Translations under genes and position numbers: made by a program
The notes under the pieces: generated by a model
The model's input: only the letters and a program-made list of their open reading frames with translations
Database searches by the model: none
What the model was told of the DNA's origin: nothing
Part shown: piece after piece, positions 1 through 60,045 of the stretch
Layout: each line of letters opens with the position of its first letter
Position numbering within the stretch: the first letter of the stretch is position 1
Origin: Rebecca billardiae RCC1528
Taxonomy: Eukaryota; Protista; Haptophyta
Reading direction: 5' to 3'
Length of the DNA stretch: 64,000 nt
Assembly (NCBI GenBank): GCA_965240325.2
Contig: OZ251239.1
Coordinates: forward strand, 1,054,001-1,118,000

Positions 1-1916
1 AGCGGCGGCGCCGCGCCACCAGGGACACCTGGCGAGGGCGCGCGCAGCGGAGCGCCGCCGTCGGCGCGCGCGCCGGTGGCGGCCGCGGCGTCGACGGCGG
101 CCGCGTGCGGCGACGCGCCCCTGCGCCGGTCGCCCGTCGGGTCGGAGCGGCGCCTGCGCGAGACGTACGCGCCGCCCATCAGAATCACCGCCTGCGTGCG
201 CGAGTAGAACAGCTCGGTGTGCTCCCGGATGAACGAGGCGGGCGCAGTCATGCACGCCGTGATGACGAGACGGAGGCCCGTGATCGGAGCTTCTCTGTAG
301 AGCGCATGCAGAAGGTCCTCGCCCATCACGTCGTCGTCGTCGTCGTCGTCGTCCGACTCGCTGCCGGAGCTGGCAAGCAGCTCGTCGTCGCCGTCGTCGC
401 GCTGCGCGCGCGCGCCCGCCGCGCCCTCGCCGCCGCCGCCGCCGCCGCCACCGCCGCCGCCACACTCCGAGTCAGGCGCGCCGTCGGCTGGCGGCACCAC
501 CGTGACAGCGGGCGGCGCGCCGCGCGCGCCGCGCGGCTCGGCCGCCTCGTGCGGCCCCGCGCCGCTCGGCACGGTCGCCACGGCCATCGCGGCCGCGGCG
601 GCGATGCCCGAGGCGCCGGCGCTGCTCAGCCGAGACCGGTGCTCCGGGGACATGCCGAAGCGCGGCGAGGACGAGAGCGAGCGCACGATGGCGGCATTCT
701 GATTGATGCGAGCCGTGCGGGGGCTGGGCGTACGCGCCTCGCGCGCGCTCGCGGTGGGCACGCGCATCAGCGACGACGGCGCAGCCGGCGGCGGCGGCAG
801 GTGCGGCGCGGACGCCGCGGCGGGCATCTTGGACCCCGCGGGGCCGGAGGTGGGCGCCGTCGGCTGGCACGACTGAGGCGGCGGCGTGCACTGCGCGCGC
901 GCGGCGGCGGCCGCGTCGGCCGGCGGCGGCGGCGGCGGCGCGTCGCTGTTGGAGCCGCGCGCGCCCGCCGCGGCCGAGCCGGACACCGCCTCCTCCTCCG
1001 GCAGGTTGCCGAGAGCGGAGCCGGTCGAGCGGCGCGAGCCGCGCGTCGCGGGCTTGGGCGTGTGCACGCCCACGCGGATGTGCCCGAGCCCGAGCGCCTT
1101 GAGCATCTCCCGGACTCGCAGGACTTGGTCACGGAGCTGGCGGCGCGAGGCGCGGTCAAGCCTCCCCGGAAGCGGGCAGATCACAATGCCGAGCACGGTG
1201 AGCACGCCGAGCTCGACGAGCGCGCGCATCATCACCAGCGCGAGCTGGTCGTCCGTCGTGTTGTCCCACCGCACCTGCGTGAGGATCACCACCTTCACCG
1301 CGATCTGCGTGCGGCAGTCCGCCCACACTCCGGAAGTGTACGCTTCCTCCAGGAACCGGACCAGCGCGGGTGGGTCCTGCACCCCGTGGAGCTGCTCGGT
1401 GAGGCCGATGATGAGGTGCTCCACCATCGACGGCACGCCCAGCCTGCCCGCCGCGCGCGGCACCACGGCCTCGGACTCCCGCCCGCGGCTCCCGCCGCCG
1501 CCGCCGCCGCCGGGCATCGCGTCGGCGAGCTTCGACGCGACTTCGTCAAACGCAAGCTGCACGGCGCGCTGGAGCGCGGGAGAGTTGTCCGTTGACGCGC
1601 GGCGCAGCCCGGGGAGCGCGGGCCGCTCCGCCTCCGCGTCGTGCGCCGCCGCGCCGGGCAAGGCCACCTCGGCACCGGGCTCCCAGACCGACACCTCCTC
1701 GCTCACGTCTGCGAGCGATCGCTCGGGCGGCTCGCTCCGCGCTCGCGAGGACGCGCGCCCGATCGGCACTGGCAACAGGTCTTGCTCGGCGGTTCGCGAG
1801 CGCGGTGACGTCTCCGCAGCCGCGGGCGCGGCGCCCGCGCTCGCCGCCGCGGAGTTCCAGAGTGGCAGCACCGACTGCGGGATTAGCTCCTTCACAGCCT
1901 CAAGCAGCGAGCGAGA

Positions 1917-1948
<32 letters not shown>

Positions 1949-3572
1949 TGTCGCTGCTGTGCGCCCACGCGGCGTCGCGTGCCGGCCCGTGGCCGTTCGC
2001 GCCGCCCCCGCCGCCCAGCGCGGCACTCGCGCCCGCCGCGACGGCCGCGGCGGCGGCAGCCGCCGCGCTCGCGCCCGCCGTGCCGCCCACCGTGCCCGCG
2101 CCGCCAGCAGCACCGCCCAGCCCAGCGCCCGCCTGCCCGCCCGCGCCGAGCGCCTCTCGCGTAGGCAGCGCGGGCGACGTTCGGTTCCACACACCGTACC
2201 GGCCGAGCCGGCCGATGTGGAGGCGTGGCGAGGCGGAGGCCGGGCTGGCGGAAGGGCTGCCGCACGACGCGCTGCTCGCGCGGCGCTCGCGCTCGCCCGC
2301 CGCCGCGTCCGCGCGCACCGCCGCGTCCGCCACGATCCCCACCTTGATCGGACAGAAGAAGCGCGCGCGGAGAGACGGCACGGCCGCGAGCAGCGCGATC
2401 GAATCGTACATCGCAAACGTGGTCACGAGATCCCAGACTGAGTCGGTGTCGGAGCGGTCGGTCTCGACGGCGTCGCAGAAGCGGCGGAGGAACCACGCGC
2501 GGTCGCACCGGTCGGGCAGCCCCTCGCGCGCCTCCGAGCCCGACGGCGCGCACGCGCGCCGCCAGAGCGACTCGATCGACATGCGCTGCGCGTTGCGCAG
2601 CCGGCAGCCGATGATCGAGCCGGCGTCGGCCATGTCGTCGTAGATGTGGCGCGGCACGGAGCACTTGTACCCGCTCCAGCGCGAGACGATCACGAGGCGC
2701 ACGCCGAGCTCCTGGCACCGCCGGTAGAAGTACGCGCTCGACGCGCGGTCGAACTCGTTGTTGTGCGCGGTGTCCGGCTCAATGAAGGGCTCACGCCGCG
2801 CCGCGCCGCCCGCCTGCAGCCGGCCGCGGCCGCGCGGCGAGTTGTACGGCTGCGCGCCGCCCATCACGACGACCTCCTTGACCTTGGCGACGAAGAGCTT
2901 CTCGTTGTCGCGCAGGAAGAGCGCAATGTCCTTGAGCGACGAGATCAGCAGCACGGTGAGCGAGCACGCCGCCGCGGCTTCGAAAGTCCGGAGCAGCAGC
3001 AGCCGCCCGGGCTCGAGCAGGAACGAGCGCATGCCGAGCGCGGAGGCGGTGTACGGCGCGTGCTCGGTGAAGGCGTCCTCGCCGTGCGAGCCGCCGTCCG
3101 TCCCGATCCCCACGGGGATCGAGTGCATGTGCAGCACGTCGAGCGTGCCGCGCACGAGCCGCGCGCGCGCAAACGCGGGCGTGAGGTTCGCGACGACCGC
3201 GCGGCACTCGACGAGGCCGAGGCGGGAGAGGTGCGAGAGGAGGACGAGCGCCATCTCGTCGTCGAGGTCCTGTCCGGCGTCACTGATCATCACCAGCGGC
3301 ACCGGCGGCTCGTTCTCGCCCGACTGCGCCGAGGCAGGATCGAGCGACGAGCTGCCGCCGTGCTCGCCGGTGCGCGCGCGCGCGGCGTCACTCTCGGCCA
3401 AGCTGCTGCGCCTGTCCCCCCCGCCCCGCGCCGCGCCGCGCGAGAGGCGGCGCCCGATCAGAATGCCGACGAGCACGCCGATCGACGCCGGCAATGCGAG
3501 CCCGCGCAGGGCTCGCGCTATTCCCGACGACACCGTGGGCATCGTCGCGGCCGCTGGGGTGCGAGCCAGCAT
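1..3572 (-). CDS. Large protein with two inosine/uridine-preferring nucleoside hydrolase-like domains, N-terminal hydrophobic segment and low-complexity inserts; 3' end runs off the window
   Basis: Manual translation of the minus frame from ATG 3572 (or 3542) stays open toward position 1, so it is absent from the ORF track. Motifs: PLVMISDAGQDLDDEMAL, IPVGIG, KVKEVVVMGGA, EPDTAHNNEFD, MYDSIALLAA. Second copy: NTTDDQLALVMM..HIRVGV..QAVILMGGA. Confidence 0.8.
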
Positions 3573-3837
3573 CTCGCGAGCCCTCGAGCACAGGATGCGC
3601 CTCGCCGAGGCGCTGTTGCAAGCCGCGTATTCATCACCTTACCCGGCCTGTGCAACAGCGTATGAACAGGCGGGTAGGCACGTTGCCACTGCACATAATG
3701 GGAGATTTTGCATGCCCCCATATTCTGTCATATCATTCCGGCCAACCCGCTCCGCTCAGCAGATATTACGAGAGGAGAAGAAAAGTCGACGGACGACCGG
3801 GGCGACGGGCCGACGGCAAAGAGCACAACTCTATCAT

Positions 3838-6829: not shown

Positions 6830-8116
6830 ATGTCGGCGGGCCTGCACAACCCCCTGCAGCTGCACGCGCCCGGCCATGCGCCTACCCTGATCGAGATGCT
6901 TGCGATCGAGCGGCTGATGCCGCAGCTGCGCGAAGCGCTCCAGTACACGCTCGCCGTCGTCGCGGCGCGCCACCCGCGCCTGCTCCGCGCTCACGCGTAC
7001 TCGGACGAGTTGTGGGCGTTGTGCCTGCTGGTGCTCGAGGCGCACTGCCTGCGCACGGCGGACGCGTCGTTCGCCGAGAGCTTCTACGGCATCCGCCGCG
7101 CCCGGCGCGACCGGCACGGCCGCACCTCGCGCCTGACCGCGCACCAGCGCGCGCTCTCCCTGCTCGCCCTCGTCGCCCTCCCGTACGCGCGCGCCAAGGC
7201 GGCCGCGCTGCACCGCGAGGCGATGGGCGCGCGGCGCGGCGCCGTGCTCGCGCGCGCGGCGGCGCGCGCGCCGCCGACGCTACCGCCGACGCCGGCTGCG
7301 GCGCGAGGGGCGCGGGCCTCCGCGCCGCAGCCGCAGGCCCGTGCCACCGCCGTCGCTGCCACGCCGGCCGCGGCGCCGCTCGGGGCGCGCGCGCGCGTTG
7401 ACGCTGCTCGGACGGCCGCGGCCGCCGCGCTCGCGCGAGCGGCGCGCCACGTGTCGCGCGTGGTGCGCATGTGCGTGGTGGGCGCGTACCCGCTCTTCGA
7501 CACGGCGGCCGAGGCCGAGCGCTTCGGCTGGCAGCTCGCCCACGCCTTTGGCGCCACGCCCCACTGGTCGACTCTACTATTCTGTGCTCGCGTTGCGTAC
7601 GTGCGGCGTGCGCCCGACGACGAGATCTCCGCCGAGGCGACGGCGGCGGCTGGGGCGATGGCGGCGGCGCTGCGCGAGGTGCGCGGGCTCGCGCGCGCCG
7701 GGGCGGCGCAGCACGCGCCCGCCCTCGCGCGCGCGCTCGGCCGCGTCCTGCGCCTCTCGGGCGCCATTGCGCTCGACCACGCGCGGCACGGGCTGATCAT
7801 TCTCATCGTGGCCATCAAGATCCTGCACTGGTGGTACTCGCCCGAGGCCGTGGCCGCGAAGCCGCCGGCGCCGCCGCTGCCGCCGCCGCCGCCGCTGCCG
7901 CCGGCGCCCGGCGCGCGCGCGCTCCCCGCGGAGAAGCACGTCTGCCCGCTCTGCCGCATGCCGCGCGTGAACGCGACGCTCGCGCCCTCCGGTTACGTCT
8001 TCTGTTACCGCTGCATCTTCGACGCGCTCGAGCGGGACGGGCGCTGCCCGGTGACGCGCATGCCCGCGGAGGTCGAGGCGCTGCGCAAGCTGTACGAGCC
8101 GGCGGGCGACGCGTGA
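6830..8116 (+). CDS. PEX12: Peroxin 12 (Pex2/Pex12 N-terminal region plus C-terminal RING)
   Basis: PTLIEMLA..L..ALQY, DASFAESFYGIRR, KILHWWYS, CPLCRMPRVNATLAPSGYVFCYRCI..GRCPVT..LRKLY. Confidence 0.95.
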   Translation: MSAGLHNPLQLHAPGHAPTLIEMLAIERLMPQLREALQYTLAVVAARHPRLLRAHAYSDELWALCLLVLEAHCLRTADASFAESFYGIRRARRDRHGRTSRLTAHQRALSLLALVALPYARAKAAALHREAMGARRGAVLARAAARAPPTLPPTPAAARGARASAPQPQARATAVAATPAAAPLGARARVDAARTAAAAALARAARHVSRVVRMCVVGAYPLFDTAAEAERFGWQLAHAFGATPHWSTLLFCARVAYVRRAPDDEISAEATAAAGAMAAALREVRGLARAGAAQHAPALARALGRVLRLSGAIALDHARHGLIILIVAIKILHWWYSPEAVAAKPPAPPLPPPPPLPPAPGARALPAEKHVCPLCRMPRVNATLAPSGYVFCYRCIFDALERDGRCPVTRMPAEVEALRKLYEPAGDA

Positions 8117-8387
8117 GGGCGCAGCGGCCCGTCCAGCGTCGGCCGTGTGCACCGCCCAGCGCAGTCGTCGGGAGGGTGACGACTGCCGCAGTCGTCACCC
8201 TCATGAGCTGTCTTGATACTCAACTCGGTGGCCACCTGCTTGAGAGCTGGCCACGGCGGAATGAGTGGTGACGAAATAATAAAAACACGACATCCCGCCT
8301 CGGCTGACGTCCACGATGGGCGCCTTCGAGAAGCCTCCGCTCCGGCCTATCCACCGGCGCGCCGCGTCGGTCCATCCCGCGGCCGCG

Positions 8388-9248
8388 ATGGTGGCGTCAC
8401 GGCTTGTCGCGCTCACTCTGGCCGCTAGCGCGAGTGGCGGCTCACCCGCGATGCTGCGGAGTGCGTTCGGAGCCCGATCGCTCGCGCTCCGTCCTCTCTC
8501 CCTGCGCGGCGGCCGGAGCGCCGCCCCGCCCACCATGTCGACTGCGCACGAGGCGCCGGCGTTGGAGTTCTACACAAACGACATGTGCCCGTACGCGCAG
8601 CGCGTGTGGATCGTGCTGGAGGAGCTCGGCGTGCCGTACAACAAGACACTCATCGACCTGCGCGACAAGCCTGCGTGGTACGTGCAGTCCGTCAACCCGC
8701 GCGGGAAGGTGCCTGCGATCCGTGATCTGTCCGATGGCACGGTGGTGGTCGAGTCGCTCGTGGCGAACGAGTACCTGGTCGAGCGCTTCGGCGAGCAGCA
8801 CGAGTCGTCGCTCATGCCGAGCCAGGCCGAGCCCAGGGCGCGCGTGCGCCTGTGGAACGCCCACCTGGACTCCGTCCTCGCGCCCGCGCAGTTCACGCTG
8901 CTGATGAATCGCGACGCGGAGACCGAGGAGCAGAAGCTGGCAGCGCTGCACGCCGCGCTCGACGTGTACGAGCGCGAGCTGGTCGGGCCGTACCTCGTCG
9001 GCGAGATGTTCACGCTCGCCGACGCCGCGGCGCTGCCCTTCTTCGAGCGGCTCACCGTCTCGCTCCGCCACTTCAAGGGGCTCGAGCCGATCGACGCGCA
9101 GCGGTACCCGCGGCTCACGCGCTACCTTGAGACGGCGATGGCGCGGCCGAGCTTCCTGGCGACCAAGCGCGACGAGGCCGACCTGATCCGCGTGTACCAG
9201 GCGTTCGTGAGCACCGACTACAAGTTTGGCGGGCTGAATCGCGCCTAG
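8388..9248 (+). CDS. Glutathione S-transferase, Cys-type (omega/lambda-like), with bipartite presequence
   Basis: MCPYAQRVWI, INPxGKVP-like VNPRGKVPAI, ESLVANEYL, FTLADAAALPFFER; hydrophobic N-terminus from ATG 8388. Confidence 0.9.
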   Translation: MVASRLVALTLAASASGGSPAMLRSAFGARSLALRPLSLRGGRSAAPPTMSTAHEAPALEFYTNDMCPYAQRVWIVLEELGVPYNKTLIDLRDKPAWYVQSVNPRGKVPAIRDLSDGTVVVESLVANEYLVERFGEQHESSLMPSQAEPRARVRLWNAHLDSVLAPAQFTLLMNRDAETEEQKLAALHAALDVYERELVGPYLVGEMFTLADAAALPFFERLTVSLRHFKGLEPIDAQRYPRLTRYLETAMARPSFLATKRDEADLIRVYQAFVSTDYKFGGLNRA

Positions 9249-9689
9249 CCGCGGCCAGCGGCCGACGGGCCGCGCTGGCCGCAGCGAGTGCTTGCGGAAC
9301 CGGAGCCACGGCGATGGCATCAGCATTGACAATGCCAGTGTCGCCGTATGTCGTTGCCCGCGCTGGCACCGCGCCACGGCGGCTGGCTCGGGCATGGCGG
9401 GCATCGTCGGCTCGTGTCGTCACTCAGGCTTCAGCAGCTGCTCTCGCGCGGTGATAATATATATATATATGACGATTTATGAGAGTAGTTGAGCAGATTT
9501 GACTTTTGAGAGTATACAGTCAATTATTAATGATAAAATCTCCGCAGCCAGGCCTGGGTCAACCGGTTGACCCCTGGCTGATGCCGCCCAGCAGGCGGGC
9601 CAGGGCGCCCGAGGGCGGCATGCGCATCGGTCGGCATGAGCCATGACACTGCGCCTCGGCTAGCATAGCGCAGCAGCTGCTCATGCGAG

Positions 9690-10571
9690 TCATGCGCCAC
9701 GCGCGCGCACCACCTGCTCCCACGCAGCCTTGGCGGCGGTGTGTTCGGGGGTGCCCACTGGGTGGTCGAGCACAAGGCCACACGACTGCATCAGGCTGTA
9801 CACCATGGTGGGGCCGACGAACTTAAAGCCGCGCTTCTTCAGCGCGGCGCTCAGCCGCTCAGCGACGGGCGTGACGGTGGGTAGATCGCGCGGGTCCGTC
9901 ACCGTCGTCACGACCGGCGCGTGGCCAACGTGTGACCACAGGAAATCATCCAGCGCGGATGCGCAGTGGCTGTTGGTAAGGCTCCACTCGGAGCGCAGGG
10001 CCTGCACCGCGCGCGCGTTGGAGATGACCGACTCGATCTTGCCGCGGTGGCGCACGATCGCGCCGGCGCCGGTCTTGCTGCTCGCGAGCAGGGCGTCCAC
10101 CTCCGCCGCACCCATCGCCGCGCACGCGTCGACATCGAATCGGTGAAAGGCCGCTCGATAGGCCTCGCGCTTTTTCAGTATGGTTGCCCAGGAGAGACCC
10201 GCCTGCGCGCCCTCGAGGCAGAGCTTCTCGAAGAGCGGGGTCTCGCCGAGCTTGGGGAAACCCCACTCCGTGCGCATGTACTGGCGATACTCTTCGTCCA
10301 CGCCACTCATGAGGCTGTCGAACCAGGCGCCGTCCGCGGCGGCGGCATCCGCCGCGCGCGGCGACGCGCCGTCCGCGGCGGCGGCATCCGCCGCGCGCGG
10401 CCGCTTGTTGGGCCTTGCGCCGGACTGTGGCTTGGGCGGAGGCGCCACCAACTTGACGGGCGCGCTGGCAGGCACGCCTCGCGCAGCTCGCGCACGCGTC
10501 GACGGTCGCATCTGCATCGCTCGTGTGCTCGCAAGGATTGCCAGGGTCAAGCGCACGGCCACGCCCACCAT
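9690..10571 (-). CDS. tag: DNA-3-methyladenine glycosylase I (Tag family) with N-terminal presequence
   Basis: EWG, LFEKLCLEGAQAGLSWATILKKRE, IVRHRGKIESVISNA, LKKRGFKFVGPT..SLMQSCG..DH. Confidence 0.93.
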   Translation of the reverse strand: MVGVAVRLTLAILASTRAMQMRPSTRARAARGVPASAPVKLVAPPPKPQSGARPNKRPRAADAAAADGASPRAADAAAADGAWFDSLMSGVDEEYRQYMRTEWGFPKLGETPLFEKLCLEGAQAGLSWATILKKREAYRAAFHRFDVDACAAMGAAEVDALLASSKTGAGAIVRHRGKIESVISNARAVQALRSEWSLTNSHCASALDDFLWSHVGHAPVVTTVTDPRDLPTVTPVAERLSAALKKRGFKFVGPTMVYSLMQSCGLVLDHPVGTPEHTAAKAAWEQVVRARGA

Positions 10572-10749
10572 GTGCGTGTTTGGTTCCCCCCGCTTCGCGG
10601 ACGGCTGCCCCGGGAAATCCCGGAATCCGGCCCGTCGTTGCTGCCGATGTTCCGAGCCGGACCAGGGCCGGGCGCGACCTTTGATCCACCGAGCCCTCAT
10701 TACGAGCGCCGGCCGAGGATCGAGGCGACGACGGCGCCGCGCTTGGCGG

Positions 10750-12216
10750 ATGCGCTGGGCGGTGCTCCTGGCCACGTCGCGCGCGCTCTCGGCAGCAGCC
10801 ATGACTGCGACGAGCAAAGTAGTCGAGCCGCGCGCGCTGCGCCACGTGGCCTCGGCGGAGGCGCCGCTGCCGTGCGGGCTGCTCGAGCGCGAGCACACGC
10901 TCACCTGCCCGCTCGACTGGACGGCGGCGGCCGGGAGCGGCAGCACGATCGACGTGTACGTGCGCGAGGTCTCGCTGGCGAAGAATGCGGGCAAGGAGCT
11001 CCCGCTCCTGCTCTACCTGCAGGGCGGCCCGGGCTTCGGCTCGCCGCGCCCGACCGCGCCGCCGACCGGCTGGATGAAGAAGGCGCTCGACGACTTTCGA
11101 GTCCTGCTGCTCGACCAGCGCGGCACGGGGCGCAGCACGCCGGTCACGCCGGAGGGCGTGCGCGCCCTCGGCCCGCCCGAGGCACAGGCTGCGTACCTCG
11201 CCTGCCTGCGCGCCGACTCCATCGTCCGCGACTGCGAGGCCGTGCGCGCCGCCGTCGGCGGCGCGAACGCAAAGCTCACCCTCCTCGGCCAATCTTTTGG
11301 CGGCTTCTGCATACTGACGTACCTCAGCCTGTACCCGGGCTCGCTCGAGCGCGCGCTCGTGACCTTCGGGCTCGCGCCCGTCGGCCAGCCCGCGCTCGAG
11401 GTGTACCGCCACACCTTCGAGCGCATGACCGAGCGCAACCGGCGCTTCTACCAGAAGTACCCGGGTGACGTTCGGAAGGTGCGCGCGGTGTTGCGCGCAC
11501 TCGCGGCCGAGCCCGCGCCGATGGCGGGCGGTGGCGTGCTCACGCCGCGGCGGTTTCTGCAGCTCGGGCTGCTGCTCGGCTCGGCGAGCGGCTTCGAGGC
11601 GCTGCACTACCTCCTCGAGGCCCCGTTCGAGGGCGGCCTCGCCGCGCCGGCCGACCCGGCGCGCCCACGCCTCTCAAAGCAGTTTGTGACGGCGTGCGAG
11701 CGGCAGCAGCCGTTCGAGGGCGCGCCCATCTTCTGGATCCTGCACGAGCTGATCTACGCGGACGGCGAGCACCAGCCGACGGCGTGGGCGGCGTCGCGCG
11801 CGCACGCCGAGCTCGCCGGCGGGCCCTTCGACTTTGCCGCCGTGCTTGGCAACGAGGACGAGGACGGCGCGCCCGCCTACTTCTCCGGCGAGATGGTGTA
11901 CCCGTGGATGGCCGAGGACTACGCCGAGCTGCGCGGGCTGGGCGAGGCGGCGGAGCTGCTCGCGAGCAAGCGGGACTGGCCGCGGCTGTACGACGAGTCG
12001 GTGCTGCGCGACACGAAGGTGCCCGTGGCCGCGCTCATCGCGTACGACGACATCTACGTAGAGCGCGCCTACTCTGAGCGCGTCGTGCGGCTGCTCGGCG
12101 AGCGCGCGAGCGTGTGGTGCACCAACGAGTTCGCGCATTCCGGGCTGCGCGACGACCCGAGCGTCTTCACCAAGCTGCTGGAGATGAGCAAGGGCGAGAG
12201 CGCCATCCCCGCCTGA
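10750..12216 (+). CDS. Prolyl aminopeptidase / proline iminopeptidase (peptidase S33)
   Basis: LLYLQGGPGF, LLDQRGTGRSTP, RADSIVRDCE, nucleophile motif GQSFGG, YDDIYV, TNEFAHSGLR. Confidence 0.93.
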   Translation: MRWAVLLATSRALSAAAMTATSKVVEPRALRHVASAEAPLPCGLLEREHTLTCPLDWTAAAGSGSTIDVYVREVSLAKNAGKELPLLLYLQGGPGFGSPRPTAPPTGWMKKALDDFRVLLLDQRGTGRSTPVTPEGVRALGPPEAQAAYLACLRADSIVRDCEAVRAAVGGANAKLTLLGQSFGGFCILTYLSLYPGSLERALVTFGLAPVGQPALEVYRHTFERMTERNRRFYQKYPGDVRKVRAVLRALAAEPAPMAGGGVLTPRRFLQLGLLLGSASGFEALHYLLEAPFEGGLAAPADPARPRLSKQFVTACERQQPFEGAPIFWILHELIYADGEHQPTAWAASRAHAELAGGPFDFAAVLGNEDEDGAPAYFSGEMVYPWMAEDYAELRGLGEAAELLASKRDWPRLYDESVLRDTKVPVAALIAYDDIYVERAYSERVVRLLGERASVWCTNEFAHSGLRDDPSVFTKLLEMSKGESAIPA

Positions 12217-12538
12217 GCGGCGCCTGTTGCCGCATGGCCGCACCGTGTGCGCGCCGCACGTGGCATCGTGGATGCCCTGAGCGGTACGCGCTGTGCTGGG
12301 ACGTGCTCTAAGACGTGTCCTCAGGCGCGCATGCGGCCTGCGGGCGCGTGCTCTGAGGCTGCGCGCGCGGCGCGCGGCCCGCGGGTGGTGCGGCAGCGGG
12401 CATGCTTTTTCAAAAATAAAATCGCCGGCGCGATGCCGATTTTCGCGACGATAGGCTTTTCGCCGCGGTGGAATTCGTCATCAAGGCAAAATACGTGGCG
12501 GCCCAGGGCGCCCGCGCCGCGCGCGTCCCAGCTCGCTG

Positions 12539-13897
12539 ATGAGCCGGCTCGCCATCGCAGCACTGCTGCTGTGGGCCGCATCGAGCGAGCGGGCGGTGGG
12601 CAGGGGAGACAGCCGCCTAGTGAGCGACCGCGCGCTGCAGCCCTTGTCCCTCCGCGGGGGCATCCTCGGCGGCAGGCAGCGCCGCGAGAGGCGAGAGCAG
12701 CGCGCGGCGGAGAAGGAGGCTGAGGCTGCGCTGGATGCCGCCGTCGCTGCAGCGACTCGAGCGGAGCTGACCGGCGCGGAGGCGGAGTCCGCGCCGGAAC
12801 CTAGCGTGGTCGACGAGCCGCCGACCACAGCGAGCGCCGTCGAGCCCGAGCCCGAACCCGAGCCCGCCGCCCCAGCGCCCGCAGGCGGCGAGGGCGGCGG
12901 CTCCGCCGTGGCAGCGGCGCTGCTTGGCGCCGCGATGTCTCAGTCGACGCCGCCGCCGGCAGCGGCGGCTGCGCCGAGCGGGGAGACGGCGGAGGACGAG
13001 GACGACGGCACGCCCCTCGGCGCCGCGCTCGCGCGCCTCCGCGCCTCCGCCGGCCCCGCGTACGGCATGGCGCTGGACACACTCGTGACTGTCGTCTCAA
13101 ACGTGCGCGCGCATCCGGACGAGCGCAAGTTCCGCCGGTTGCGGCTGAACAACGCGCTGATCAAGACGCGGCTGCGCGCGCTGGACGGCGGCGCCGAGTG
13201 CCTCTTCGCCCTCGGCTTCCGCCAGGAGGGCGAGGTCGGCGACGCCGCCGCGTACGTGCTCGACGACGTCGACGAGCCCGCGCTCGCGGCCGCGGCCGAG
13301 CGGCTCGTCAGCGTACGGAGCAAGGCGGTGGTGTCGGAGCAGGCGGCCAAGTCGGCCGCGGCGGGCCTGCTCGACCGCGCGCCGGAGGCGGTGAAGGAGG
13401 CGCTCGCCGCCGACGCCGAGCTGCGCTCGGCGGCCTCCGCCATGGTCGCGCACCCGCTCTTCTCCCACCTGATGGGCGACGCGGGCTTTGCCGAGCGCGC
13501 CACCTTTGCCGCCAACGACCCGCGCGGCCTGCGTGCGCTCGTCGAGGCCTTCAGCACGGGCCGGATCGAGCCGGTGAGCTCGCGCGAGGCGTGGTTCGAC
13601 CTGCTGCTCGACAACAAGTGCGTCGTCGCCCTCTTCTCCGCGAAGTGGTGCGGGCCGTGCAAGCTGCTCCGGCCCATCGTCGCGCACCTCTCGCAGGTGC
13701 CCTCGCTCTCAAAGCTCAAGTTTGTGCACGTCGATGGCGACGAGCTGCCCGTGGTCGCGCAGGAGGCGCACGTGAGCGCGTACCCGACCGTGAAGCTCTT
13801 CGTCGACTGCCGCGAGCAGGAGACCGTCGTCGGCGGCGACGTGCAGAAGCTCGTGCGCGTGCTCGAAGCGGCGGCGAGCTCGGCCTACAGCCGCTGA
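12539..13897 (+). CDS. PUB-domain plus thioredoxin protein with signal peptide (sPUB-like)
   Basis: PUB: TLVTVVSNVRAHPDERKFRRLRLNN..GGAECLFALGF. Thioredoxin: FSAKWCGPCK..VSAYPT. N-terminal MSRLAIAALLLWAASS. Confidence 0.88.
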   Translation: MSRLAIAALLLWAASSERAVGRGDSRLVSDRALQPLSLRGGILGGRQRRERREQRAAEKEAEAALDAAVAAATRAELTGAEAESAPEPSVVDEPPTTASAVEPEPEPEPAAPAPAGGEGGGSAVAAALLGAAMSQSTPPPAAAAAPSGETAEDEDDGTPLGAALARLRASAGPAYGMALDTLVTVVSNVRAHPDERKFRRLRLNNALIKTRLRALDGGAECLFALGFRQEGEVGDAAAYVLDDVDEPALAAAAERLVSVRSKAVVSEQAAKSAAAGLLDRAPEAVKEALAADAELRSAASAMVAHPLFSHLMGDAGFAERATFAANDPRGLRALVEAFSTGRIEPVSSREAWFDLLLDNKCVVALFSAKWCGPCKLLRPIVAHLSQVPSLSKLKFVHVDGDELPVVAQEAHVSAYPTVKLFVDCREQETVVGGDVQKLVRVLEAAASSAYSR

Positions 13898-17671: not shown

Positions 17672-18730
17672 TCAGCTGCCCGCGTGGAAGTCCGCGAGGA
17701 TGCGCGCCGCCTCGTCCGGCCGCTCGAGGTGCGGCACGTGCCCGCAGTTGTCCAGCAGCTCGAGGCGCGCGCCGCCGAGCAGCTCTGACACGCGCGGCGC
17801 CGTCTCGTCTGGGGGCACGATGCCGTCGTCCTTGCCCCACATGAGCAGCACCTCGCGGCGGCGCGCCGCGTCGGCGGCCTCGGCGCGCGTGAGCAGCGGC
17901 AGCTGCGACGAGATCGCGATCCCGCCGGACAGCATGTACTCCACGTTCCCATCCAGCCAGCGCGGCAGCTCCACCGGCAGTCGGCCCACCTCCAGCGCGT
18001 CGGTTGTGGCGAACAGCTCCGCGTCTGAGTAGGACATCTTGTTCGCGATCGAGCGGAGCCAGCGGCTGCCGAGGACGCGCACGCCGGCGGAGGCGAGCGG
18101 GCGGGGCAACGAGGACATCGCGCCCGTCCCGTCCACGAGCACCTGCGGGTCGAGCAGCGCGAGGCGCTCGACGGCGTCTGGCGCGTCGAGAGTGAGACCG
18201 GCGGCAAACGCGGCGCCGAGCGACGTGCCGACGAGCGTGACGGGCGCGTCGACGGCCTGGCGCCAGAACTCGTAGAGGTGGCGGCGCTTCGCCTCGGACG
18301 AGAAGTCGCGCACGCGGTCGCGCGACGTGAAGCCCCAGCCCAGAATATCGACGGCGATGACGTCGTGGCCGAGTGCCTCCAGCTCCGGGACGAGCCGCCG
18401 CCACTCGAGGGAGGAGGAGTCGAAGCCGTGGAGGAGGAGGATGGGCGGCGCGTCGGAGGGGCGGGCGGACGCGTCCGTGCGGTAGTACACCGTGCGCACC
18501 GGGCCGTCCGCGATCGCGCCGTCGAGCCGCACGTCGAACGTGCGCAGCTTGCGCGCCATGTCGCGCGCGCGCTGCTCCTCGATCGACTCGATGGCGGGCG
18601 GCATCCACTCGGGCCACGCGCCGGAGACGGCGGCGCTGGCGACCGGGGCGCATCGCGCGGGTACGCGTGTCCGCAGCGGCCCCGGCGTCGCGCCGTGCGC
18701 GACGGCCGTGATGAGCGCGAGCAGCAGCAT
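17672..18730 (-). CDS. Alpha/beta hydrolase with bipartite presequence
   Basis: LLLHGFDSSSLEWRR, DILGWGF, GTSLG, WGKDDGI, CGHVPHLERP. Confidence 0.9.
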   Translation of the reverse strand: MLLLALITAVAHGATPGPLRTRVPARCAPVASAAVSGAWPEWMPPAIESIEEQRARDMARKLRTFDVRLDGAIADGPVRTVYYRTDASARPSDAPPILLLHGFDSSSLEWRRLVPELEALGHDVIAVDILGWGFTSRDRVRDFSSEAKRRHLYEFWRQAVDAPVTLVGTSLGAAFAAGLTLDAPDAVERLALLDPQVLVDGTGAMSSLPRPLASAGVRVLGSRWLRSIANKMSYSDAELFATTDALEVGRLPVELPRWLDGNVEYMLSGGIAISSQLPLLTRAEAADAARRREVLLMWGKDDGIVPPDETAPRVSELLGGARLELLDNCGHVPHLERPDEAARILADFHAGS

Positions 18731-18923
18731 GGCACGCGCGCACATCAAGTCCGCGCGCTGCATCGTGAGTGCGCTTCGAGCGGATGCAAGGCCAAGGACG
18801 CGTGGTCCGGATCAAGGTCAAAGATGTCGAACGACCCGGACGCTTGCTTTCAACTGCCGCCGTGCGCGCGCTGCACGCCACCCACCGGCTGTGCGGGGAA
18901 GACGACGGGAGGGAGCTTGCTCG

Positions 18924-51012: not shown

Positions 51013-51966
51013 TCAGCCGTGTGTGCGCGGCGCCCACGGCCACGACAGGGCCCCATGAGCACCCGGCACGATGGTGCCCGCGGGCACGACGCGCTTCGGC
51101 GGCGTGCTCTGGCGCCCAGAGATGCGCGCGCGCGCCTGCTCCGCATTCTCCATTCGGCGCACGGCGCGGCCCCAGAGCGAGCGGTCGACTGCGTAGGATT
51201 TGCCGTGCCACTTGGGGTCGCGGCACAGGACGAGGTGCGGCCCGATGAGCAGGCCAGCGAGCGCACCGCCGACCAGGCCGCCGGCGTGGCCGGCGTTGTC
51301 CACGCCCGAGCCGGGGATCAGCCCCGTCGCGAGGTTGAGCGCCATCACCTGCAGCAGCGAGCTGACGGCGGCGGCGGCGCGCTCGCCCAACACGGCCTCG
51401 TTGGAGGCCAGGAAGGCTCCATACGCGCCGACGAGGCCGAAGATGGCGCCGGAGGCGCCGACGCTGCGGGCCGCGATGTTGTACTTGAACGATGCGGCCG
51501 TACCGATGGCGCCCGAGACGAGGTAGGTCGTGAGGAACCGCGCCGTGCCAAACGAGCGCTCGACAGCCGGGCCAATGTTCTGCAGAGAATAGCTGTTCAC
51601 CATCAGGTGGCCGATGCTGCCGTGCAGGAAGACCGGCGTGAGAAGGCGCGGCCAGTCGTACAGCCGAAAGGCGCGCGCGGGCTTGCAGCCCATCGCGGTG
51701 AGCCTCCCCTGCGTGGCGAGCTGCATCACGTACATGAGCGCGTTCGCGCCGATGAGCGCGGACGTGCTGCCAACCTCGCGCTGGAATCGGAACGGGCGCT
51801 CGCCGGGCTGCAGCTGCGCGGGGCGGTTGAACTCCAGCAGCTCGTCGACTTTGCGCCGATCGCGTGCACGCGCGCCGCCCCGCACGTCAGGCCTCGCGCC
51901 CAGCGCAAGCGGGGCGGCGAGCGCAGCCGTCAAGGCGAGGACAGCGAAACGCGCCGACGAAGACAT
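51013..51966 (-). CDS. Rhomboid intramembrane serine protease with signal peptide
   Basis: WPRLLTPVFLHGSIGHLMVN, catalytic GASG, DNAGHAGG; start ATG 51966. Confidence 0.92.
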   Translation of the reverse strand: MSSSARFAVLALTAALAAPLALGARPDVRGGARARDRRKVDELLEFNRPAQLQPGERPFRFQREVGSTSALIGANALMYVMQLATQGRLTAMGCKPARAFRLYDWPRLLTPVFLHGSIGHLMVNSYSLQNIGPAVERSFGTARFLTTYLVSGAIGTAASFKYNIAARSVGASGAIFGLVGAYGAFLASNEAVLGERAAAAVSSLLQVMALNLATGLIPGSGVDNAGHAGGLVGGALAGLLIGPHLVLCRDPKWHGKSYAVDRSLWGRAVRRMENAEQARARISGRQSTPPKRVVPAGTIVPGAHGALSWPWAPRTHG

Positions 51967-57184: not shown

Positions 57185-57853
57185 TCAGCCGCTCTCGTCG
57201 TCACCGTCTCCCCAGTCAAAGTCGAGCTCATCGTCGTCATTGCGCTCGCCCTCGTCGTCCGCGGCGCCAGCGGGCTGCTGCTGGTCGCTGAGCGTGTCGA
57301 TCAGCGCCATCACGCGCACCGGTCCAGAGATGTCGACAGTGGTGAAGTGCAGGTCGGGGATGCGCTTCATGTGCGTGAGCCGCTGGGCGAGCTCGAAACG
57401 CACGGACTTGCGGTTGTCCTCCAGCCATCTGATCGCGCGGATCGTGTCGAGCTTCTCGCCGTACGTCGACACGCGCACGTTGGCGGAGCGCAGGTCATCC
57501 GTGACCGCCACATCGACGACCGAGATCATTTGGCGAAGGTCCTCCTTGAGGGTGTTACGCTGCTGGTGCACGACGCCGCGCTGAATCACGTCAGAGAGCT
57601 CCGCACGAACCACCTGGCCCACCCGCTGGCTACGCTGGAAGCCATGGTTGGACGATCGCCGACTGCGCGCGCCAGCGGCCATGTGCGCGCTCGCGTCGCG
57701 CAGCGCTCGTGCCGCGCAGCGGCCAGAGTGTGCTGCCACCACGTGCCCGGGCCCCGAAGATGCGCCGGGAGTCCACCCGTGCGCGCCTGCGAGCGCGAGC
57801 GCGAGCACGAGCAGCGGCCACGCTCGCGTCGCGAGCACTCCCCTCGGAGCCAT
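57185..57853 (-). CDS. rbfA: Plastid ribosome-binding factor A
   Basis: RSQRVGQVVRAELSDVI, ISVVDVAVTDDLRSANVRVS, LAQRLTHMKRIPDLHF; signal peptide ending AHG-W. Confidence 0.92.
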   Translation of the reverse strand: MAPRGVLATRAWPLLVLALALAGAHGWTPGASSGPGHVVAAHSGRCAARALRDASAHMAAGARSRRSSNHGFQRSQRVGQVVRAELSDVIQRGVVHQQRNTLKEDLRQMISVVDVAVTDDLRSANVRVSTYGEKLDTIRAIRWLEDNRKSVRFELAQRLTHMKRIPDLHFTTVDISGPVRVMALIDTLSDQQQPAGAADDEGERNDDDELDFDWGDGDDESG

Positions 57854-58161: not shown

Positions 58162-60045
58162 ATGATGCTGTCGCTCGCGATCGGTCTGCTCGCGTCTGGC
58201 TATGTCGCCCGCCCGGCACCACCCACCGCCCCTCGCCTCGCCCGCGCCACACGAGCGTCGGCGCTCGTGCAGATGTCTAAGACCGTCGACTTTGACGACG
58301 ACAGCCGCGAGAAGCTGATGCGCGGCATCGACGCGGTTGCGAATGCGGTGAAGGTGACGCTCGGTCCGAAGGGGCGCAACGTCGTCCTCGAGCGCGCGTA
58401 CGGCGCGCCCGAGATCGTCAACGACGGCGTCACGATCGCGCGCGACATCGAGCTGGAGAACCCGCAGGAGAACGTCGGCGTCAAGCTGCTCGTCGAGGTG
58501 GCGTCGAAGACGGACCTGAAGGCGGGCGACGGCACGACGACGTCGACGGTGCTGGCGCAGGCCATGGTGCGCGAGGGCCTCAAGTCCGTCGCGGCGGGCG
58601 CCTCGCCCGTCTCGCTGCAGCGCGGCATCATGAAGGCCGCAAAGGCGCTCGTCAAGGAGATCAACGCGCTGTCAAAGCCGATCGCGGGCAACGAGGACCT
58701 GCGCTCGATCGCGACGATCTCGACGAACTCGGTGGAGATGGGGCGGATCATCTCGACCGCGTTCGAGAAGGTCGGCGCGCTCGGCTCGACCACCGTCGAG
58801 GACGGCCAGGTCCTCACCGACGAGATCGACTTCACGGAGGGGATGGAGATCGACCGTGGCTACTCGTCGCCCTACTTCGTCAAGAACCAGGAGTCGCAGT
58901 CGGCGCAGCTGAACAAGCCGCGGGTGCTGATCACGGACCGGAAGCTGACGAACATGAACGAGATGGTCACCCTCCTCGAGGCCATCGTCAAGCTCAAGCA
59001 GCCCCTCGTCATCATCGCCGAGGACGTGACGGGCGAGGCGCTGTCGTCCCTCGTCCTGAACAAGATGCGCGGCGTGCTCGACGTGGTCTCGGTCAAGGCG
59101 CCCGGGTTCGGCGACCGGCGGCGCGCGTACATGGAGGACATCGCGGTGCTCACCGGCGCGACGTTCGTCACCGAGCAGCTGGGCGTGACGATGGAGCAGG
59201 TCACGCCCGAGATGCTCGGCCTCGCCGAGCGCGTCGTCGTCGGCAAGGAGGTGACGACCATCATCTCGACCGGCGAGCACTCGGAGGCGGTCGCGCAGCG
59301 CATCAAGCTGATCCAGGCGCAGATGGCGGAGACGGACAACCAGTTCGACCTCGAGAAGGGCGAGGAGCGCATCGCCAAGCTGGGCGGCGCGATCGCGCGC
59401 ATCAAGGTGCGCTTGATGCGCGCCCGCGCGCTGCCCGCCGCGCAGCGCGCCCTCGCCCCTCGCATCCCGCCCTCGCCGCGCTCACCACGCGCGCGCGCTC
59501 GCCGCCGCCACGGCCGCGCACCCGCCGCCGCCGCCGCGCAGGTGGGCGCCGCGACTGAGACCGAGCTCAAGGACAAGAAGCTCCGGTACGAGGACGCGCT
59601 CAACTCGGTGAAGTGCGCCCTCGAGGCCGGCGTCGTCGCCGGCGGCGGCGCGACGCTCGCTTACCTTGCAGGTCAGCAGCAGCGCATCATCGACTCGATC
59701 ACGTTTGCGGACGAGGATGAGGTGAGGGGGGCTGAGATTGTGTTCCGCGCCATCACGGCGCCGATCCAGCAGATCGCCGTGAACGCGGGCGTCGACGGCG
59801 CCGTCGTGCTGGAGAACGTGAAGGAGGGTGAGTACGGGTATGGGTACAACGCGGCGACCGACACGTACGAGGACCTCATCGACGCGGGCGTGCTCGACCC
59901 CGCGAAGGTGACGTGCTGGGGCGTGGAGAACAGCGCATCGATCGCCGGCTCCATCTTGACGACGAACGTCCTCATCTGCGAGATCCCGGAGAAGGAGGAC
60001 GTGGATGCAGGCTTGGCGGGGGCCGGCATGGAGGGCATGTACTAA
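58162..60045 (+). CDS. CPN60: Plastid chaperonin 60 (GroEL family); in-frame intron 59407-59541
   Basis: AVKVTLGPKGRNVV, GDGTTT, KAPGFGDRR, IK|VGAATETELKDKKLRYEDALN, DPAKV; signal peptide ending ASG-Y. Confidence 0.97.
   Translation: MMLSLAIGLLASGYVARPAPPTAPRLARATRASALVQMSKTVDFDDDSREKLMRGIDAVANAVKVTLGPKGRNVVLERAYGAPEIVNDGVTIARDIELENPQENVGVKLLVEVASKTDLKAGDGTTTSTVLAQAMVREGLKSVAAGASPVSLQRGIMKAAKALVKEINALSKPIAGNEDLRSIATISTNSVEMGRIISTAFEKVGALGSTTVEDGQVLTDEIDFTEGMEIDRGYSSPYFVKNQESQSAQLNKPRVLITDRKLTNMNEMVTLLEAIVKLKQPLVIIAEDVTGEALSSLVLNKMRGVLDVVSVKAPGFGDRRRAYMEDIAVLTGATFVTEQLGVTMEQVTPEMLGLAERVVVGKEVTTIISTGEHSEAVAQRIKLIQAQMAETDNQFDLEKGEERIAKLGGAIARIKVRLMRARALPAAQRALAPRIPPSPRSPRARARRRHGRAPAAAAAQVGAATETELKDKKLRYEDALNSVKCALEAGVVAGGGATLAYLAGQQQRIIDSITFADEDEVRGAEIVFRAITAPIQQIAVNAGVDGAVVLENVKEGEYGYGYNAATDTYEDLIDAGVLDPAKVTCWGVENSASIAGSILTTNVLICEIPEKEDVDAGLAGAGMEGMY

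Follow-up and report, generated by a model that had tools for sequence, protein, structure and literature searches.

The 64-kb window analysed here (the whole 64,000-nucleotide stretch at positions 1,054,001 to 1,118,000 of contig OZ251239.1 from the haptophyte Rebecca billardiae RCC1528; GC 70.6%) encodes three proteins with predicted signal peptides that carry, shortly before their mature domains, an xRGG motif resembling the C-terminal tail of ubiquitin. We find that this motif, typically [RS]-L-R-G-G (LxGG type), recurs in presequences of periplastid marker proteins throughout this genome, is conserved among orthologues, and is common to cryptophytes, diatoms, and haptophytes. Very probably it is a functional element with which the presequence ends. 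The explanation that we favour on balance is that it forms a conserved end-mark of the transit-peptide-like part in proteins resident in the periplastid compartment, and that the presequence is clipped there. The known bipartite-presequence system would thus gain an end motif, which is here extended to a haptophyte and across lineages. The window proteins, their motifs, and two stromal-type controls are as follows (window numbering):

8388..9249, plus strand: DHAR-like GST, 286 aa (translation and Pfam; its homologues are DHAR-type GSTs)
8493..8513, plus strand: PLSLRGG of the GST, residues 36-42, 15 residues N-terminal to the conserved GST core; the P0005 orthologue has ALSLRGG at the equivalent place
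12539..13897, plus strand: sPUB homologue, 452 aa, with signal peptide, presequence, PUB, and thioredoxin domains (translation and Pfam)
12641..12661, plus strand: PLSLRGG of the sPUB homologue, residues 35-41 (translation and degenerate DNA pattern)
51013..51966, minus strand: rhomboid protease with signal peptide, 317 aa (translation and Pfam)
51874..51888, minus strand: DVRGG of the rhomboid protease, residues 27-31, about 5 residues past the predicted signal-peptide cut
57185..57853, minus strand: RbfA, control with a stromal-type presequence (AHG/WTPG) and no xRGG
58162..60045, plus strand: Cpn60, control with a stromal-type presequence (ASG/YVAR) and no xRGG

Translation agrees with the first-pass annotation of this DNA on the position of all three motifs, and DNA comparison bears out its statement that the two PLSLRGG heptapeptides use different codons. 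It also describes Cpn60 and RbfA correctly: their signal peptides are followed by an aromatic residue (YVAR and WTPG), and their presequences are devoid of xRGG. Pfam assigns the three proteins to the GST, PUB plus thioredoxin, and rhomboid families. The named homologues that match best indicate a haptophyte close to Pavlovophyceae; for the GST, identity with Pavlovales sp. CCMP2436 is 50%. An alternative in-frame ATG lies at 8316, 24 codons upstream of 8388; the residue numbering of the GST presumes the 8388 start, which is consistent with the P0005 orthologue. The VRGG of the rhomboid protease is the weakest of the three instances.

To the same pattern belong periplastid markers encoded elsewhere in the genome, which was searched for Hsp70, CDC48_N, DER1, and UFD1 with inspection of the N-termini; signal peptides were called by a simple hydrophobicity rule and cut sites were estimated by eye. 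The motif is present in both Cdc48 copies with a signal peptide (copy 1, ...RVLVERLRGG/ADVAVEAEDDEE; copy 2, ...LGLSRLRGG/DDVASTPAAESLAADDDD, in short LSRLRGG/DDVAST), and the cytosolic Cdc48 lacks signal peptide and motif alike. A Der1 copy with a signal peptide reads ...ALAGRLRGG/RSMEELTEK, 15 aa N-terminal to the Der1 core. Among the Hsp70s, one of periplastid type combines a signal peptide with a 190-aa extension that contains three motifs, SLLRGG, MRLRGG, and RSLRGG/AAKGG, spaced 52 and 34 aa apart, the RSLRGG lying 18 aa ahead of GIDLGTTYS; its gene (L026:679-2070; G000 C31 ~574,000) contains introns. Neither extension nor motif was found in three cytosolic Hsp70s and four ER-type Hsp70s with signal peptides, and xRGG is absent from about 10 distinct light-harvesting complex (LHC) presequences (...SALA/FNGPAMRAP...). 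An FtsH-like protein with a signal peptide reads ...AAPLSRLRGG/ADGSS at about residue 45 and is a candidate periplastid-membrane FtsH; this AAA protease (L078:769-1515; G000 C1 ~546,500) has a membrane span.

Together these sites give the genome consensus (P/A)-L-S-(R)-L-R-G-G, with RLRGG at five of 10 sites and a hydrophobic N-terminal stretch, by the same rule, in all 10 cases. In every case the motif lies at the transition from a presequence that is basic, poor in acidic residues, and free of lysine to the mature protein, which is often acidic. Experimental periplastid localization exists for homologues of sPUB and for the Cdc48, Der1, and Hsp70 families; the GST, the rhomboid protease, and the FtsH-like protein have no homologue localized in this way. 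The sPUB protein in particular has been localized to the periplastid compartment of Phaeodactylum, where it is a proposed cofactor of sCdc48, the ATPase of the symbiont-specific ER-associated-degradation-like machinery (SELMA) (PMC3101018). In keeping with the periplastid bipartite signal, the proteins combine a predicted signal peptide, a probably non-aromatic, non-Leu residue after its cut (+1), an N-terminal extension, and homology to localized sPUB, sCdc48, sDer1, and sHsp70. The likely +1 residues, from cuts estimated by eye, are S in the GST, E in sPUB, and A in the rhomboid protease, as opposed to F, Y, or W in LHC proteins, Cpn60, and RbfA. The published rule, as given in open-access accounts, differs in that it covers this first residue and not a motif at the far end of the extension.

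Der1 orthologues retain the motif while the remainder of the presequence diverges. In an alignment of seven Der1 orthologues that are 57-73% identical to the protein of this genome, among them that of Diacronema lutheri (67%), the only invariant presequence columns are R63, R65, G66, and G67 (R-x-R-G-G). The motif takes the forms LRLRGG (three times), MRVRGG, LRVRGG, RRLRGG, and GRLRGG, each followed by R, K, or S; a metagenome scan with the Der1 alignment gave no matches. Of the sPUB orthologues, P0090 (VLLRGG/LFRRRR), L034 (RWRGG/ILGLKRRR), and P0156 (LQLRGG/EGIN) carry it and three more distant ones do not; an exhaustive protein search yielded few sPUBs of full length.

The GST family allowed a quantitative comparison. 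The presequences of 44 N-extended homologues, 2,606 residues in all, contain 16 instances of RGG, as against 1.4 expected from composition; the mature parts, with 10,161 residues, contain four. Fifteen of the homologues have RGG in the presequence, and in 13 of these it is found 6-21 aa ahead of the core; AT-rich diatom-like sequences are included (e.g., ...VVSLRGG/YDATIGPDP). Variants read LKGG, LAGG, LHGG, and GMGG. Gly-Gly is the most conserved element, followed by the Leu at P4, with P3 tolerant (R, but in variants also K, A, H, or M). An invariant Gly-Gly, mostly Leu at P4, and a tolerant P3 fit an LxGG specificity pattern. In a tabulation of 44 motif sites, none has Pro at P1'.

The window motif is not a GC artefact. 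Since a genome of 70% GC encodes L, R, and G often, LRGG near N-termini might be meaningless, and at the DNA level the RLRGG pattern shows no excess: it has 652 matches genome-wide against 965 for the reversed control, the majority of them in non-coding frames or in a repeat. These counts are uninformative, since most matches are out of frame; three to four of the first 20 genomic sites are in frame, one being a new presequence case (the FtsH-like protein) and two internal. The lack of excess in DNA indicates instead that the signal is specific to the protein context of presequences. There, shuffling of presequences that keeps their R, G, and G residues produces [LV]RGG in just 0.5-5% of trials per protein (a probability of 0.005-0.05). 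In the window, PLSLRGG as a degenerate DNA pattern has two matches against 0.03 expected. Moreover, Der1 orthologues keep R-x-R-G-G in otherwise divergent presequences, AT-rich diatom-like and cryptophyte sequences have the motif too, and none of the stromal and ER control proteins examined carries it. Chance and composition are thus hardly credible as an explanation.

The repeat met in this count is dispersed, at least about 150 nt long, with near-identical copies of lower GC (~0.68), and reads ...SASPAGPKDSAGGSAPLRPPRLRGGRT in one frame. Its copies L088, L090, L094, L095, and L096 lie on G000 C1 at 2.44, 3.42, 3.93, 3.96, and 3.97 Mb and make up a quarter of the first 20 RLRGG DNA matches. 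It is probably a small mobile element.

The GST and sPUB genes lie 4 kb apart and share an identical heptapeptide, with agreement at nine of 10 residues over AL[RQ]PLSLRGG, as would be expected had a presequence exon been copied recently between the neighbours. However, four of the seven PLSLRGG codons differ and the surrounding DNA is identical at only 33 of 63 positions (52%), so the likeness exists at the protein level only and no recent duplication is indicated. In addition, orthologues of each of the two proteins already have the motif, and the PLS(R)LRGG consensus recurs in unlinked genes on other contigs. We therefore give exon copying next to no weight. Besides the GST and sPUB copies, a single further site in the 72-Mb genome truly encodes PLSLRGG: a MoeB-like protein has it within its rhodanese domain, unrelated to the presequence motif.

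The same motif is found in the two other lineages for which we consulted the periplastid reference proteins of ASAFind 2.0 (Appendix S3; PMC12136025). In the cryptophyte Guillardia theta, EF-1a reads ...SMLRLRGG/GKEKHH, with the motif abutting the canonical EF-1a N-terminus (PMC12136025 data). Further Guillardia examples include 14-3-3 (ALRLRGG/VDGED), RRM1 (PLRLRGG/FRGD), CyP (ALRLRGG/GLPY), Ubc8 (IPLRGG/ANPT), Cdc48 (CMRLRGG/NVAM), UGGt (MSLRGG/AGSD), and FBPase-like and FBA-like proteins, and the periplastid ubiquitin precursor reads ...LRVRGG/MQVFVK...LRLRGG/SY. Most Guillardia cases, like the three Der1 orthologues above, contain LRLRGG, the exact ubiquitin tail. In the diatom Thalassiosira pseudonana, the motif occurs in sDer1-1 (FDLRGG/AKKK), TrxH (LSLRGG/VVHES), sSec14 (FQIRGG/SDAV), sCdc48-2 (IGRGG/ASDEEE), and sCdc48 (SARGG/SVEP). 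ASAFind 2 scores only the 25 residues past the signal-peptide cut and its account does not mention the motif (PMC12136025). Full-text searches gave no open-access account tying an LRGG-type motif to periplastid presequences, apart from the remark on Toxoplasma PUBL cited below; subscription papers may hold an earlier mention, as the first-pass annotation supposed.

The first-pass annotation had proposed a deubiquitinase-cleaved maturation or sorting signal of periplastid proteins. This is partly supported, in that the motif is recurrent and conserved in SELMA-type presequences and close to the ubiquitin tail. A role in sorting is unlikely: a single change at +1 redirects diatom periplastid proteins to the stroma (PMC12136025), and an aromatic +1 coexists with the motif in some homologues. 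The position of the motif at the junction, above all in EF-1a, favours a processing site, and we consider cleavage there the somewhat better supported reading. In the proposed sequence of events, the signal peptide would first be removed in the ER, and the transit-peptide-like part would then carry the protein through SELMA. In SELMA components, chaperones, and some enzymes that stay in the periplastid compartment, the motif would form the C-terminal end of this part, and the presequence would probably be cut off there, with the bond behind Gly-Gly as the most plausible site, to release the mature protein. A peptidase for the transit-peptide-like part has been postulated in the periplastid compartment, with no enzyme assigned (PMC5756292).

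The leading candidate for this step is a ubiquitin-specific cysteine protease of the periplastid space, of the ptDUP type or similar, cutting after Gly-Gly; both the LxGG pattern and the match to the tail of ubiquitin would favour it. The likeness to the tails of ubiquitin, NEDD8, and ISG15 (LRLRGG, LALRGG) extends to identical penta- to heptapeptides (RLRGG, LRLRGG, and VLRLRGG in P0086). As in ubiquitin-fusion precursors cut by deubiquitinases, an invariant Gly-Gly directly precedes the protein to be released, and the Guillardia periplastid ubiquitin precursor is a genuine case of such a tail in the same compartment. Maturation of this precursor demands that the compartment contain a protease which can cut after LRLRGG. 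Members of the ptDUP clade (USP7/Ubp15-like) for which a bipartite signal is predicted are found in haptophytes and stramenopiles, and cryptophytes lack the clade (PMC12412216), so that the Guillardia enzyme must be a different one. In contrast to ubiquitin-type tails, the motif is preceded by a low-complexity presequence rather than by a ubiquitin fold, and cleavage is putative here.

Viral enzymes offer a precedent. The coronavirus PLpro and adenain are LXGG-specific cysteine proteases that process viral polyproteins, and they illustrate that a linear LxGG without a ubiquitin body can suffice as a cleavage signal for an enzyme of deubiquitinase fold; in this genome none of the kind was identified. 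A cut after Gly-Gly by a deubiquitinase-like enzyme nevertheless remains a tentative proposal, to which we give about one chance in three by judgement rather than by measurement. At similar odds stands the more far-reaching reading that the periplastid presequence peptidase is a deubiquitinase proper (ptDUP or a relative) and that presequence removal amounts to the "deubiquitination" of an LRLRGG mimic inherited by all red-plastid SELMA lineages. Such a mimic possibly originated from an ancestral signal-peptide-ubiquitin fusion cassette. If so, clipping would also fix periplastid residency, since it would take away what the translocon of the plastid envelope could otherwise engage.

Several observations weigh against clipping after Gly-Gly in periplastid proteins. 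Canonical deubiquitinases require the ubiquitin fold, and Pfam detects no ubiquitin domain upstream of the motif, where the 30-60 aa are of low complexity; lacking a beta-grasp fold, these presequences can be tail mimics only, not ubiquitin-like proteins. The N-terminome data obtained by terminal amine isotopic labeling of substrates (TAILS) contain none of the checked periplastid proteins of Thalassiosira and thus supply no mature N-terminus for a motif-bearing periplastid protein. The only experimental N-termini found there to adjoin an RGG in a protein with signal peptide and extension are those of Thalassiosira 24761, which begin at R57 (RGGCKPDLY...) and G58 (GGCK...) (PMC3774753 supplementary file 5; PMC12136025 Appendix S7) and hence place the cut ahead of RGG or within it rather than behind Gly-Gly. 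This protein has the signal-peptide cut VSA/NTL with a non-aromatic +1 and a 33-aa propeptide, and it was recovered exclusively in the whole-cell fraction. The association with the compartment is also incomplete. Several listed Thalassiosira and Guillardia periplastid proteins lack the motif, as does a Ufd1-like protein with a signal peptide in our genome, an exception among SELMA components, which has an aromatic +1 and only an xDGG (SVAG/FAAAAERDGG/APAL); its gene is L042:1252-1896 on the minus strand (G000 C21 ~1,253,000). Conversely, some GST homologues and Guillardia XP_005822237.1, tentatively chlorophyll-synthase-like, combine an aromatic +1 with the motif, which is therefore not strictly periplastid-specific.

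The missing ubiquitin fold and the 24761 N-termini leave sTLP-1 or an M16-type peptidase as a serious rival. In this case the likeness to ubiquitin would be coincidental, with an M16 enzyme (similar to the stromal or mitochondrial processing peptidase) cutting L-R/G-G or R-G/G, or with sTLP-1, a trypsin-like and known periplastid protease, cutting after Arg. The diatom stromal cleavage motif, which has Leu at -2, Ser/Thr at -3 to -6, Met/Ala/Ser at +1, and acidic residues downstream (Huesgen 2013, PMC3774753), shares with ours its Leu, the upstream hydroxylated residues, the acidic stretches, and the place at the junction of presequence and mature protein. S-L-R/G-G would fit that rule at Leu -2 and Ser -3, with the Gly at +1 outside the preferred residues. 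LKGG variants also retain a basic residue. On the other hand, the stromal motif needs neither Gly-Gly nor Arg, and the LHC, Cpn60, and RbfA presequences of this genome do without xRGG. Both Gly residues are invariant while the Arg position takes A, H, and M in GST variants (LAGG, LHGG, GMGG); a protease that recognizes Arg at P1 would demand the opposite. Most Guillardia cases match ubiquitin at six residues, and 24761 may not be a periplastid protein. Taking both sides into account, we judge a peptidase unrelated to ubiquitin to be unlikely.

Alternatively, the motif might be left uncut, as a mimic of the ubiquitin tail that is bound by SELMA or another periplastid factor and that holds or hands over the protein. 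Three copies 34-52 aa apart in one Hsp70 would suit a binding signal, and so would the upstream RGG of the apicoplast import protein PUBL of Toxoplasma, described as a "potential deubiquitinase cleavage motif" and found to be dispensable and unprocessed (PMC5487736), with the difference that this RGG precedes a ubiquitin-like domain. A ubiquitin-like feature could also replace ubiquitylation in presequences free of lysine: the eight motif-bearing presequences tabulated (the window GST, sPUB, and rhomboid protease; L026, L031, L032, L038, and L078) contain no lysine and 3-24 arginines up to the motif. Phaeodactylum SELMA import is reported to require N-terminal lysines; if this is true, the present alga would ubiquitylate elsewhere or in another way. 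Lysine is, however, generally rare in this GC-rich genome. Moreover, the motif is constant in its place at the boundary to the mature part and not in its distance from the signal peptide, the Guillardia EF-1a motif directly abuts the canonical GKEK N-terminus, and in diatoms the +1 residue suffices to turn periplastid targeting into stromal targeting. An uncut retention signal accordingly appears improbable, more so than cleavage by an unrelated peptidase.

Other systems also place a short conserved motif behind the signal peptide. PEXEL of Plasmodium, with its protease plasmepsin V, and the oomycete RxLR lie tens of residues after the signal peptide, are processed or may be so, and are tied to trafficking. 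They differ from the present motif in sequence, protease, and destination; here the distance to the signal peptide ranges from 5 to about 150 aa, whereas that to the mature domain is short.

The best current predictor recovers just 25% of periplastid proteins (PMC12136025). If our interpretation is correct, the LxGG motif would provide a second, easily scored feature for predicting the periplastid proteomes of haptophytes, diatoms, and cryptophytes, and the mature N-termini of periplastid proteins would become predictable from it. It would also supply a concrete candidate enzyme class, the ubiquitin-specific proteases of the SELMA system, and would link the processing of presequences with the ubiquitin system that gave rise to SELMA.

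Three further genes of the window deserve mention. An alpha/beta-hydrolase (17675-18763, minus strand) combines a signal peptide (AHG/ATPG, the +1 being non-aromatic) with a transit-like stretch that lacks xRGG; the motif is thus not universal among proteins with signal peptide and extension that lack an aromatic +1. A 1189-aa open reading frame with a nucleoside-hydrolase domain (9-3575, minus strand) begins with a hydrophobic span, after which comes RRLSRGAARGG/GDRRSS; this may represent a signal anchor or else another case of the ARGG type. Directly 5' of the GST gene lies a gene for a Pex2/Pex12-family peroxin (6830-8113, plus strand).

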